The notes below the pieces were generated by a model. The model did no database searches and was not told where the DNA came from. It saw nothing but the letters and a program-made list of their open reading frames with translations. Positions 45,442-62,458 of a stretch of DNA of 64,000 nt are shown here, one piece after another. Every line of letters begins with the position of its first letter. Within the stretch, counting starts at the first letter, position 1. Source of the stretch: Salpingoeca rosetta (lineage: Eukaryota; Protista; Choanoflagellata). Where the stretch lies: contig JAWQFM010000033.1 in the NCBI GenBank assembly GCA_033442325.1, forward strand, positions 531,669 through 595,668. The letters run 5' to 3'. Both the position numbers and the translations under genes were made by a program.

Positions 45442-48400
45442 ATGCCAAGGGTTCCTTCTAACGGGAGCAGGCAGTTGCAAGTATGCGCGCAGCAGCAAGG
45501 CGGCGGCAGCAGTAGCAGCAGCAGCAGGGTGGACGACATGCTCCATCTGCTGGAAAGATGGACCCTGGATGAAGACAGTGCAAAGTATGCCAAAGTGCTG
45601 CGTGTGCAGCGAGAACTGGAAGATGACTTGCAGGCCGCACAACAACAGCTTGCCGCTTTAAAGGCGGGACATGACGAGATCAGGGCGATGCATGCGCAGG
45701 CACAGGTGGAGAGGATGAAGGCGGAGGTGGAGAGGGTGAAGGCGGAGGTGGAGAGGGTGAAGCGCCATGTTCAGCGAGTGAAGGAGATGGAGGACCTGTT
45801 CAAGAAACGCATCAATGACAAGAAAGGCGAGATCCGCAATGCACGGCATGAAAGATGGAGGACAGAACTGACAGGACCCGGCAACGGAGAAGCGGTTGCA
45901 GCGGCGGAGACGAAGGTGAAAGAGAAAGAGCGGGAATTGGCCGTGCTTGAGGAACAAAAGAAGATATGGCGCAAGCAGATGGAGGAGGAGAGGAAGAACG
46001 GAGAGGAAGAGAGGAAGAAGTGGCAGCAACAGCAGCAGCAACACAAAGTGTGGGTGCGCGCGTTGACGACATTGCTGCAGGCGGCAGGTGAGCCGCTGCC
46101 ACACACCACAAGTGCCGAGCACCTGTGGACTGTGGTGTCGCAGGTGGTGGACGACGCCCTGGCGACAGCGTGGGAGGCCGGCCTTGTGCCCGCTGCTGGC
46201 CCGCCCCGACTGGCCACTATCACTTTATCTGCTCTCCAAGCTATCGAGAAGCGCGTTGCGGAGAAGAAGATCAGCTCACCTGCCGCGATCAGAGACGGTA
46301 TGCTGTCATCCACCTCTTTGTGTGTTGTCGTGCGGATGTGGTGATGAAGACGGCCCTGCTTGTTTTGGTTGTCTTGATGACACAAGGTCAAGCGTGCACC
46401 TGTTTGCGCCTGTGTGTGTGTGTGATGTTTTGCGTTGATGTCACACAGCGCACAACACGTTTGCTTGTATCGTCGTTGCCTTTGTCACTGCTACTGCCAC
46501 TGTAATTATCGCTGCCTTTGTCACTGTGTCGCAGTTACTGTCGTTGGCATTTGCATTGGTAGCCTCCACCACCATAGTCACGCATGCGACACATTCACGC
46601 TTGTTTTGACACCTCTCCGCCCCTCATGCGCGCTGATTGCACTGCTGTGTGTGTGTGTGTGTGCGTGCAGAATTCTTTCTTCACGACGCCACCCAGCAGC
46701 ATCACCAAGCCCGAGAAGAACCCGTATCTCGTCTACTGGCCGGACAATGCCCAGTTCTTCACCGACATATGGCGAGAGCCACTCGCAAAACAGGTGCTGC
46801 AATGCAATGACATCCGTCGCCGCTGCGCTGTGTGTGCGGGCGGTGCTGGTGGAACAGTAGTGCTGTGCTCATTTCTGTGAACGTGCATGTGCGTGTGTTT
46901 GTGCGAGCGAGAATATATGAGTGCGACTGTGTGCTTGTGTGTGTGTGTGTGTGTGTGTCATGTGCTTGGTGGCATTATCATCACCACCCATCACTAAACG
47001 ACGTGCCGCCATATGTGCACTCCTCCCTATGCCTCTCACCAACCGCTCGTCCCGCACGCCTTTGTGTCAACACACTCGTGTGTATGTGCATGTGTGCGTG
47101 TGTGCATGCGTGCTTGTTTTCGCGTTTCCAGTTTGAGCTGAAGGCTGATGACATCACGCCGCAAGCAGTGATTGCAAAGATTCACGAAATACCAGTGCTG
47201 GAGGTGTCCAGCAGCCGTGGGCCCCGCCCCAGGGGGCGCCAAGTGACGCTTGGCCTGCGACAAGGTAAGGACGTGGCGAAGACTGTTGTTGCCTGTGTTT
47301 GCACTGCTTTCAGTTTTAGGTGCACGTGCAGACACGTGTACTTGGCCTTGGAGCGTTTGTCAACGTCGTCATCATCATGTGGTGTTTGGTCGTGTATTGC
47401 CGATGTGTGCGCAAGCGCACATGAAGGGTTGTGATGTGAGATGTGATTGTGACACCATCGTGCAATGCGTGCACGCTTACATCTCACCCCTGCCTATACA
47501 CACACACACACACACACACACACACACCGCTTGCTCGCAGGTCTGCCTTTGCCAAAAGCACTGCCAACAGGATGGTCCAATGAAGCGGAGATGTGCACCG
47601 ATATCGCCGAGCACCTTCGCGCCACGGCTGCGCACCTCGACCCCGGTGTCACGTTCCCGAGTGAGGTCCCAATCATGACGTACGTTGTGCGGTGCATGTT
47701 GTGTCCAGGCGTTGGAGGGGTGGGGAGTGGGTGTTTGCTGTATCCTTGTTTCCGCTCTCTTGCGTGTCCTGTGATGCTTGTGATGCTGCAAATGCCGGTT
47801 TCTTACAGGGAACCTGCCCGTGCTCTTGTCGCGCTTGCCGCCTTGCGTTGGCCAGGTTCAAGCCAGGCACCCGCCCCAAAACAGACATTGTGATGGTGGA
47901 CCGTCACACAAACACAATAGCGGCCGTGTTTGAGCTCAAGCTAGGCGAGGATGCTGATTCGCTTGGCCAGTTGGCAGCGTACGCACACCACGCGATTGTG
48001 GCGAACGTGCTTTGCATTGCAGGCGAGCACGTGCCTCTGGAGGAGCTGCCCCTGCTCGCTGGGCTGGCGATGTTTGGGCTGCGTGTCAGCCCGGTGCAGA
48101 CCACCGTTGTTGAGTTTATGGTGGCCAACGCCGGTGGAGTGGTGAAGGTGGTTGCCCACAACATCATCTCCATGCCGACGAAGAACATTGGGCAGGCTGC
48201 TCTGGCCATTTCCTGCTTTGCGGACTTCCTGCACGCGAAGTACGCCCACGCCATCAAGCAGAACACCAAGCATGGCAGCGACTTTGCGCTGAATGTCATG
48301 AAGCCCCATGTGCTGCACTTCAACCCCGACAGCGGCAAAGGTGTGTTGTTTGCTGCTTGCTCGTCTGCGTCTGTATGTGCGTGTGTGTGCCTGCGTGTGT

Positions 48401-60900: not shown

Positions 60901-62458
60901 GTCGTACAAACACAAAAGTGGCCGTGTTTGAGCTCACGCTAGGCGAGGATGCTGACTCGCTTGGCCAGTTGGCAGCGTACGCACACCACGCGATTGTGGC
61001 GAACGTGCACCGCATTGCAGGCGAGCACGTGCCTCTGGAGAAGCTGCCCCTGCTCGCTGGGCTGGCGATGTTTGGGCTGCGTGTCAACCCGGTGCAGACC
61101 ACCGTTGTGGAGTTTATGGTGGCCAACGCCGGTGGAGTGGTGAAGGTGGTTGCCCACAACATCATGTCCATGCCGACGAAGAACATTGGGCAGGCTGCTC
61201 TGGCCATTTCCTGCTTTGCGGACTTCCTCCACGCGAAGTACGCCCACGCCATCAAGCAGAACACTGAGCATGGCAGCGACTTTGCGCTGAATGTCATGAA
61301 GCCCCATGTGCTGCACTTCAACCCCGACAGCGGCAAAGGTGTGTTGTTTGCTGCTTGCTCGTCTGCGTCTGTATGTGCGTGTGTGTGTATGCATGTGTGG
61401 GTGTGTGCATGTGTGTGTGCCTGCGTCTGTATGTAGTATGTGTGTGTGCATACATGCGCCTGTCTCTCCGCCCCCTCCTCTCTCTGCCTCTCTCTGCTTC
61501 TGTTTGTGTGTGTGTGGTTGAAAGGCGGTCGCTGTGCAGCGTTGTATGCACCATTGCGCCCATGCCTGTGCTCGTGTGTGGTGTGATTCATATGATGCTG
61601 GTTGTGCTTATCGCTGTGCTGTTAGCAGAGGCACCGAAAGTGCTCAGTTCCGTCGCCAACAAAGGCAGCGGATACGTGTGCAAGTTCATCAAGACTGGGC
61701 ACCGTGCTGGCGACTTGTGTGCTGAAGAGATTGAGAACATGTGGAAGTATGTCAACGGGCAACGCGCTTGCAGTCGCATCCCCACCACCAACAGCAAGAG
61801 CAGCACCACGAACACCACCAGCAGCACCACGAACACCACCAGCAGCAACATCATCAGCAGCAGTGGCAACGACACGCAGATGATTGCGGTGCCCCACCTC
61901 GGGTCGACCCGCGCTCACATTCACGAACAGCACGTGGTGCAGCTCTGCAACAGCTTGTTTCTCCTGTCAGCGGCTGGTCTCGTTCACCATGACATTCGCT
62001 GCGCCAACGTGGTCGTGAGCGGCGACAAAGCCTCTCTTATCGACTTCGAACTGGCTGGCTGTGACGCCGATGTCATGGAGGCAGCGGAACTCGAGCCGGC
62101 TGAGGTTGCTCTTCGCAGGGACCTGCCTGAGCGGTCAGCACGCATCCGTGCAGCTGGTGACGAGCGAGTGAAACGCCACATCGAGGATGACTGGATTGCC
62201 ATGTTCTACGTGTGCGTTCTCCGGTCTGCGCTCTACAAGAGGGCACCGCAGATGGCACACAGGGCAACCAAGGACGCCATGCTGGCCGCGTTGGAACAGC
62301 TCGAGCAGCAGCAGCAGCAGCAGCAGGGGAAGGGGAAGCAAGGGGAGAAGGAGGAGGGCCATGTGGTGCTGGTCGGGATGAACCCGACGCTGCCGCAGTC
62401 GTGTGATTTGCTGGGCTGCATCAAGAAGGTCATCAAGGACATCCCGCTGTACGACTGA
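57979..62458 (+). CDS. Coiled-coil + PD-(D/E)xK nuclease-like (ExK changed to ExT) + protein kinase gene, copy 2; frame intact
   Basis: Exons 57979(or 58015)-59215, 59585-59706, 60082-60214, 60552-60690, 60854-61338 and 61626-62458 splice in frame with GT-AG. Motifs PTTDIVMVD...VFELT...LGQLAAY, HHDIRCAN, IDFE and EDDWIAMFY. Confidence 0.85.

Follow-up and report, generated by a model that had tools for sequence, protein, structure and literature searches.

Choanoflagellates are the closest living relatives of animals, and Salpingoeca rosetta is the main laboratory model for these unicellular relatives. A 64,000-nucleotide stretch of its genome (assembly GCA_033442325.1, contig JAWQFM010000033.1, positions 531,669 to 595,668 of the forward strand; hereafter the window, in whose numbering coordinates are given unless another sequence is named) carries two paralogous genes in tandem between positions 45442 and 62458, and the question that they raise is what kind of protein they encode. 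An earlier reading made from the sequence alone, which had taken the genome to be choanoflagellate-like (the window is indeed from S. rosetta), proposed that each gene encodes a long coiled coil, a nuclease of the PD-(D/E)xK fold and a stripped-down kinase, and put the pair forward as candidate Crinkler/RHS (CR) effectors. Nuclease (restriction endonuclease, REase) and kinase toxin modules are found in CR effectors, for example at the C-terminus of Phytophthora infestans CRN8, and the order nuclease then kinase occurs in about one sixth of CR C-termini (PMC5289972). By our analysis the genes are real, and so are their amplification, the coiled coil and the kinase; the nuclease call, attractive at the level of motifs, is unproven and on balance doubtful, and membership of the CR effectors is not supported.

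Two members of a clustered, lineage-restricted family

The two genes, copy 1 and copy 2, correspond to the public models P0006 and P0003, both of which are encoded exactly by the window (itself found at ~527,065-591,064 of GL832987.1 in the public assembly GCA_000188695.1), and the outer limits of the earlier finding are the ATG of P0006 (45442) and the stop codon of P0003 (62458). The six exons that had been proposed for each copy (E1 to E6 below) are correct as a core, to which the public models add further small exons and introns. Splice junctions are GT-AG throughout both models, and in both window copies all core exons have open frames and the splice sites are intact. All exons, motifs and duplication units given here lie on the plus strand.

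The proposed tandem amplification was borne out, and is larger than had been noted. Seven family members are annotated in S. rosetta, five of them within ~76 kb at about 570-650 kb of GL832987.1 (P0006, P0003 and P0007 on the plus strand, P0001 and P0005 on the minus strand), with P0004 and P0008 on the other scaffolds GL832965.1 and GL832984.1. In the window, self-blastn and MAFFT revealed a direct segmental duplication with a period of ~12.8 kb, in which 41937-50832 matches 54686-63803 at 81-100% identity, far beyond chance. The first unit comprises an upstream region, copy 1 and the 5' end of a sulfatase gene; the second comprises the corresponding upstream region, copy 2 and a re-duplicated sulfatase 5' fragment of ~520 bp. 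The duplicated blocks end in microsatellites on both sides, at (CA)104 (41846-42054) and (AC)52 (54686-54790) on the left and at (GT)81 (50509-50670) and (GT)99 (63450-63647) on the right, and the location of these ends in such long repeats points to recombination or slippage at the repeats, not to transposition. The family was therefore probably amplified by segmental duplication at microsatellites via recombination. A link to transposons, such as CR effectors have, failed to appear: among the called neighbours of the seven loci, which are sulfatases, sulfotransferases, EB1, APC1, a mitochondrial-carrier fragment, a VWA protein and unannotated genes, there was no transposase, integrase or reverse transcriptase.

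An exhaustive phmmer search of 1.84 billion representative proteins with exon E5 of copy 2 returned two matches, namely P0001, an 878-residue S. rosetta 'serine/threonine protein kinase', and P0002, a 163-residue fragment from a metagenome contig in ENA (assembly ERZ27265955). A word-indexed protein search with P0001, and further searches with the kinase region of P0003 and with an E5 profile, likewise yielded nothing beyond the seven paralogues of S. rosetta and one fragment from a metagenome, and scans of JGI metagenomes (with E5 and kinase alignments) and of IMG/VR gave no confirmed relative. As far as these searches reach, the family is restricted to S. rosetta and one metagenome relative. 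Its public annotation is 'kinase' only, and our literature search found no paper that mentions the family accessions.

The relative is informative about the architecture of the protein. The metagenome contig L001 (1,761 bp) carries a middle-domain exon and, ~120 nt further on and on the same strand, a kinase-like exon, which are respectively 42% and 34% identical to S. rosetta, and since both exons are present in the same order, the two parts travel together in a second organism. That one gene should hold both the nuclease-like exons and the kinase exon, as the earlier reading had it, agrees with this and with the public models, seven of seven of which join them; the sequences thus support, without proving, a single transcript that contains both.

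The C-terminal domain is a divergent protein kinase core

In copy 2 the last exon, E6 (61626..62458), encodes a complete kinase-like domain (VCKF, HHDIRCAN, IDFE, LPER, EDDW), a tail and the stop codon. The same domain and C-terminal tail are encoded by E6 of copy 1 (48661..49536, stop codon 49534-49536), in which an assembly gap lies and in which the strings VCKFIK, HHDIRCAN and IDFE occupy 48711-48728, 49017-49040 and 49071-49082. When a family profile of the last exon (A5) was searched against the PDB, all 247 matches at E<=1 were kinases, the best being PknE (E = 7e-4), with HHD aligned to HRD, N to N, DFE to DFG and PER to APE in register (HHDIRCAN versus HRDvKpeN). Sub-threshold Pfam matches to APH, RIO1 and Pkinase (E = 0.001-0.1) were also obtained, together with a match to a PHROG phage 'kinase' family at 1.3e-4, and the strings VCKF, HxDIRxAN, IDFELxG, LPER and DW are invariant across the paralogues and the 34%-identical L001.

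Like members of the eukaryotic protein kinase superfamily, of which the closest solved examples are the mycobacterial PknE and PknB, MAPK11 and CDK9, the family has helix E, a catalytic loop with HxD(x4)N and, in place of DFG, the similar DFE; its activation segment runs for ~28 residues up to PE, a DxW motif is present, and a strand resembling that of VAIK holds an invariant Lys. Unlike them, it has a very short N-lobe in which a degenerate Gly loop stands next to the Lys and no conserved helix-C Glu is seen, it contains a low-complexity insert rich in Ser, Thr and Asn that carries a 21-nt repeat (61783-61847 in copy 2), and it scores below the curated thresholds of the families. The earlier description of a stripped-down kinase was apt, given the HxD..N, DFE, PE and DxW elements in register with PknE and the reduced Gly loop. 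These alignments identify the C-terminal domain as a true protein-kinase core, though an atypical and divergent one, and since it keeps both catalytic residues (Asp and Asn), the metal-binding Asp and a candidate ATP-binding Lys, phosphate transfer is predicted to be probable.

The N-terminal region is a coiled coil of variable length

Exon E1 of copy 1 (45442..46297; residues 1-285 of P0006, ending at a GT donor) encodes a coiled coil followed by a conserved helical region, and the corresponding E1 region of copy 2 (58108..59215) encodes a coiled coil in which the 21-nt heptad repeats are expanded. The long N-terminal coiled coil of the sequence-only reading was confirmed from two sides. AlphaFold modelled P0003 with long helices over residues 16-224, where the predicted local distance difference test (pLDDT) score rises to 87, and the DNA of the first exon contains in-frame 21-nt tandem repeats, each unit of which encodes one heptad (45704-45762 in copy 1; 58451-58517 and 58751-58933 in copy 2). 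The number of these repeats varies between paralogues, and the region shows the hydrophobic periodicity at a and d positions. No N-terminus resembling a signal peptide is visible in any of the public models.

The central region and the nuclease question

Between the coiled coil and the kinase lies a central orphan region of ~290 residues, which spans about residues 297-589 of P0003. Exon E2 (46671..46793 in copy 1, 59585..59706 in copy 2) is 98% identical between the copies and is followed by E3 (47132..47264 and 60082..60214); the proposed nuclease signature falls in E4 (47541..47679 and 60552..60690) and in E5 (47856..48340 and 60854..61338), the latter encoding the orphan middle domain. The motifs occur in the order of a Glu-bearing helix (NEAEM, 47579-47593 in copy 1), a strand (SEVPI, 47660-47674), a hydrophobic strand that starts with Asp (DIVMVD, 47884-47901), a hydrophobic stretch with ExK (VFELK, 47926-47940), and QxxxY (GQLAAY, 47965-47982), with the ExK 16 residues past the Asp of DIVMV and the QxxxY 9 residues past the Lys. 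This order and spacing of E, D, ExK and QxxxY, and the hydrophobic context of the strands, are like those of PD-(D/E)xK nucleases of the RecB, Cas4 and YqaJ type. In a reading that follows the earlier proposal, E4 and the start of E5 would form a RecB/Cas4-type nuclease upstream of a regulatory kinase, the whole being an intracellular conflict system, defensive or selfish, headed by a coiled coil.

Several observations speak for this proposal. The combination D...ExK...QxxxY with its hydrophobic context came up 20 times among 20,000 shuffles of P0006, a background translation of 58,851 residues contained no instance of it, and the D, E, K, Q and Y are all retained in L001 at 42% identity. A nuclease followed by a kinase would also match the order in CR C-termini (PMC5289972), and the family is, as the proposal would have it, multi-copy, lineage-specific and fast-diverging. 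However, the motif was chosen post hoc, so that the shuffle rate overstates its significance, and the identity of L001 to S. rosetta is no higher in the motif stretch than elsewhere.

The motif Lys itself is a second difficulty. Every string quoted by the sequence-only reading was located on the plus strand, except that copy 2 (60590-62050; NEAEM, SEVPI, DIVMVD and GQLAAY all present) reads VFELT at 60924-60938 where VFELK had been quoted, and the statement that ExK is found in each copy was thus wrong. The full motif is present in copy 1, P0005 and L001, whereas Thr replaces Lys in copy 2, P0001, P0004, P0007 and P0008, that is, in five of the seven paralogues. Were the region a nuclease, the ExK copies (copy 1, P0005) would be nuclease-competent and the ExT copies inactive or changed in role.

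Searches at the level of profiles and structures gave the proposal no further ground. Neither the single exons nor the public spliced proteins matched a nuclease family at E<=10 in Pfam, NCBIfam, PADLOC or PHROGs, where sub-threshold matches to kinase, coiled-coil and NDK (nucleoside-diphosphate kinase) families were all that appeared, and phmmer and profile searches of the PDB with E5 found no nuclease; the PDB matches that E5 did give (a membrane protein, the receiver domain of a histidine kinase, and an NDK at E = 0.9) were at chance level. The AlphaFold model of full-length P0003, built from a seven-row alignment, has a pLDDT of 39.8 and is unusable outside the coiled coil. Modelled alone, exon E5 reached a pLDDT of 54.6, with the D...ExK stretch left unmodelled at ~30, and the two models disagree in helix and strand after the QxxxY helix. 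A Foldseek search of the PDB with this low-confidence E5 model gave nothing below E = 0.018 and no PD-(D/E)xK protein in its top 50. Unlike the RecB/Cas4/YqaJ-type nucleases, which the family matches at neither the profile nor the structure level and from which the ExT of five of the seven paralogues also sets it apart, it has ~100 residues past the QxxxY helix for which no counterpart in those nucleases could be assigned. The nuclease signature of the sequence-only reading therefore stands as a set of motifs, with the Lys lost in copy 2, and does not stand as a match to a nuclease family. Judged from sequence, we regard it as possible, and less likely than the contrary, that the central region is also a nuclease, and we hold the same reserve towards the wider proposal of a coiled-coil-headed conflict system built on it.

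One other identity was weighed for the C-terminal half of E5, a degenerate NDK-like domain. A weak Pfam NDK match (E = 0.0016-0.003) covers profile positions 58-132 of 135 at window positions 48098-48339 and at the equivalent of these in copy 2, the S. rosetta copies have an N-x-x-H-G-S-D string at the matching NDK position, and the NDK that scored E = 0.9 in the PDB search is that of E. coli. Against this, the score of 17.8 bits falls short of the curated cut-off of 27, and the four matching sequences are near-identical and therefore amount to one observation. L001 has neither the HGSD string nor the NDK match, no NDK was found with a profile to which L001 contributes, and the secondary structure predicted for E5, with three long strands, would misfit an NDK. 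The match is probably due to chance, and an NDK-like domain here is very improbable.

Several other candidates for E5 were rejected. A transmembrane segment in its hydrophobic part is contradicted by a maximal Kyte-Doolittle mean of only 1.39 over 19 residues. The three strands and helix of E5 do not supply the missing N-lobe of the kinase, as the Lys there is lost in L001 and the Lys of VCKF is kept. The Foldseek matches that resembled hexokinase, PPX and RuvC are non-significant, with template modelling (TM) scores below 0.3, and were not trusted. In the paralogue P0007 (L005:13581-14393), most of exon E5 past the QxxxY helix is absent, which may reflect a deletion, an assembly gap or the gene model.

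Comparison with Crinkler/RHS effectors

The family resembles the nuclease and kinase modules of CR effectors such as CRN8, which was compared by its description only, in its proposed domain order, its lineage-specific expansion into multiple copies and its fast-diverging segments. Expansion and rapid diversification are indeed evident, with seven paralogues and with patches 20-33% diverged between the window copies versus 4.8% for the introns. Unlike CR effectors, however, the family lacks a secretion signal, its host is free-living, and most copies have Thr for the motif Lys. No CR header, whether the ubiquitin-like LFLAK type or an equivalent, was recognised by Pfam in exon 1 or in the full public models, and searches of every library with the family proteins or alignments returned no match named Crinkler. 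The assignment to Crinkler/RHS is accordingly unsupported, there being no header domain, no detectable homology to a named CR protein and no transposon neighbour, and the same three absences tell against the nuclease proposal.

Exon patches diverge far more than introns

Copies 1 and 2 differ at 4.8% of intron positions (68 of 1,407), whereas the coiled coil (45442-46008) is 31% diverged, the second half of E3 (E3b, 47198-47264 in copy 1) 33% and E4 20%, the excess of these patches over the introns having p values from 3e-9 to 3e-50. In E6 the divergence falls below that of the introns (p = 0.005 and 0.025), which indicates purifying selection on this exon.

E3b and E4 each exist in the family as two discrete types, combined differently among the paralogues (copy 2 carries type B in both), and the paralogue nearest to copy 1 switches from one segment to the next; gene conversion has thus made the family a mosaic, in which two old types have been kept. 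The ratio of nonsynonymous to synonymous divergence (dN/dS) across the patches is 0.5-1.5, and the highest value, 1.5 for E3b, comes from 23 codons and is indistinguishable from 1. To judge from sequence comparison, the pattern hints at selection for diversity, diversifying or balancing, with which it fits; positive selection is not proven.

The genes of snake-venom phospholipase A2 (PLA2) and of conotoxins are known for accelerated evolution in which exons outpace introns in divergence, and the exon patches of the present family, at 20-33% versus 3-9% for introns, are like them in this respect. Unlike the venom case, there are here only two exon types, shuffled among paralogues, and synonymous divergence (dS) is raised too, a pattern that maintained old cassettes and gene conversion explain no less well than ongoing positive selection would.

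These data also bear on a plainer explanation, that the locus is a young, decaying or neutral family of weakly constrained kinase-like duplicates that have no special role, in which the motif is coincidental and the patches are leftovers of gene conversion. It would account for dN/dS values of 0.5-0.65 over most exons and for the unexceptional 1.5 of E3b, for the raised synonymous divergence of the patches, for the lack of much of E5 in P0007 and for the inconsistency of the public models. It sits poorly with the open frames in all core exons and the intact splice sites of both copies, with the retention of kinase catalytic residues and central motifs at 34-42% identity in a second organism, and with the purifying selection on E6, and we consider it quite unlikely.

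A candidate recognition or conflict locus

We read the locus as two intact-looking members of a lineage-restricted family that would have been amplified by segmental duplication and have since exchanged segments. The product would be a cytoplasmic protein composed of a heptad coiled coil, the orphan central region and the divergent eukaryotic-type kinase core. The coiled coil, the length of which depends on the repeats, would probably drive oligomerisation, and it may be, we infer, that the variable central region and the coiled coil set what the oligomeric kinase binds. The two old exon types of E3b and E4 and the hyperdivergent coiled coil would then point to selection for diversity in recognition or conflict. 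That the genes form a family of oligomeric kinases with variable binding regions and a role of this kind has, in our estimation, an even chance of being right. For the conflict system of the sequence-only reading, the great excess of divergence in the exon patches over the introns is indirect support, and that system is still an inference.

Several observations weigh against the reading of the family as oligomeric kinases with a recognition or conflict role. All Pfam kinase matches lie below the curated (gathering) cut-offs, the Gly-rich loop is degenerate (GSG/DGG) and only ~3 residues before the Lys of VCKF, and no acidic residue in the position of helix C is conserved between S. rosetta and L001; with such a loop and no conserved helix-C Glu, the domain could be a pseudokinase. 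Between the window copies, dN/dS in E5 and E6a is 0.5-0.65, indicating moderate constraint only, and dS in the patches is itself raised, to 0.31-0.68, so that the patches may be old exon types moved by gene conversion and not the products of recent positive selection. Finally, the D...ExK...QxxxY motif is left unexplained if the central region is purely a recognition domain.

A bolder account would take in that motif. The family would then be an intracellular nuclease and kinase module headed by a coiled coil and similar to a CR cassette, serving as an innate-immunity or self/non-self system not recognised before, in which balancing selection would keep two exon cassettes around the first helix and strand of the nuclease and most copies would be Lys-less sensors or decoys. 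We consider this account rather unlikely.

Confined to one lineage, clustered and recombining, and joining a kinase to an orphan domain, the family may plausibly be a locus of recognition or conflict; to our knowledge very few loci of such a kind are on record from choanoflagellates. Should the central domain be a nuclease, the nuclease and kinase cassette of pathogen effectors would also occur in a free-living holozoan, as a system internal to its host; otherwise the domain is still a well-defined orphan for structure determination. The family also shows that nuclease calls made from motifs need proof at the level of the fold.

Gene models, assembly gaps and neighbouring genes

The window has a GC content of ~55%, is rich in dinucleotide microsatellites, and contains three gaps of N (42776-43131; 44464-45086, 623 N; 49192-49291, 100 N). 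The last of these falls inside E6 of copy 1 and matches 60 nt of copy 2 (62160-62219) that encode the region of the DxW motif. Copy 1 up to 49191 aligns with copy 2 up to 62159, and from 49292 with copy 2 from 62220. Position 49191 and its partner are both at codon position 1, and 49292 and its partner both at codon position 2, so the flanks are collinear, and they are in frame if the true length of the gap is a multiple of three. The apparent +1 frame shift across the gap results from the conventional length of 100 N. The 'intron' of P0006 at 49166-49313 is false, as it merely steps over the gap, at the cost of 36 residues of the kinase domain. P0006 also has an extra exon (46449..46558), hydrophobic and doubtful, that is skipped by five of the six other models and to which P0008 maps in a different reading frame. 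Both this exon and the 'intron' look like annotation artefacts.

At the 5' end, P0003 has two small exons in addition to the core six, the first coding exon (57204..57239) and a second (57698..57718) whose copy 1 counterpart would fall in the gap at 44464-45086. The public model of copy 1 may start only at 45442 because of this. A likely first coding exon of copy 1, resembling 57204-57239 of copy 2, is seen at 44050-44088. The public models also contain short introns within the repeat-rich first exon, and P0003 drops short segments of the E1 region, 58786-58995 among them. On the minus strand, long open reading frames overlap exon E5 in both copies (for example 47941-48588 and 60560-61591); they coincide with no called gene and are most simply explained by GC-rich codon usage.

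The gene between the two copies (50313..55444, plus strand) encodes a sulfatase (PF00884); it lies outside the family and its 5' end was co-duplicated. Its model also matches Mito_carr and may be chimeric. A sulfatase gene, co-duplicated with the family, stands directly downstream of its members at three loci (in the window, at L005:16026-22364 and at L007:17015-24141), and two sulfotransferase genes are also nearby on scaffold GL832984.1. In the window, the re-duplication of the sulfatase gene after copy 2 covers just its first ~520 bp, at 63254-63803.

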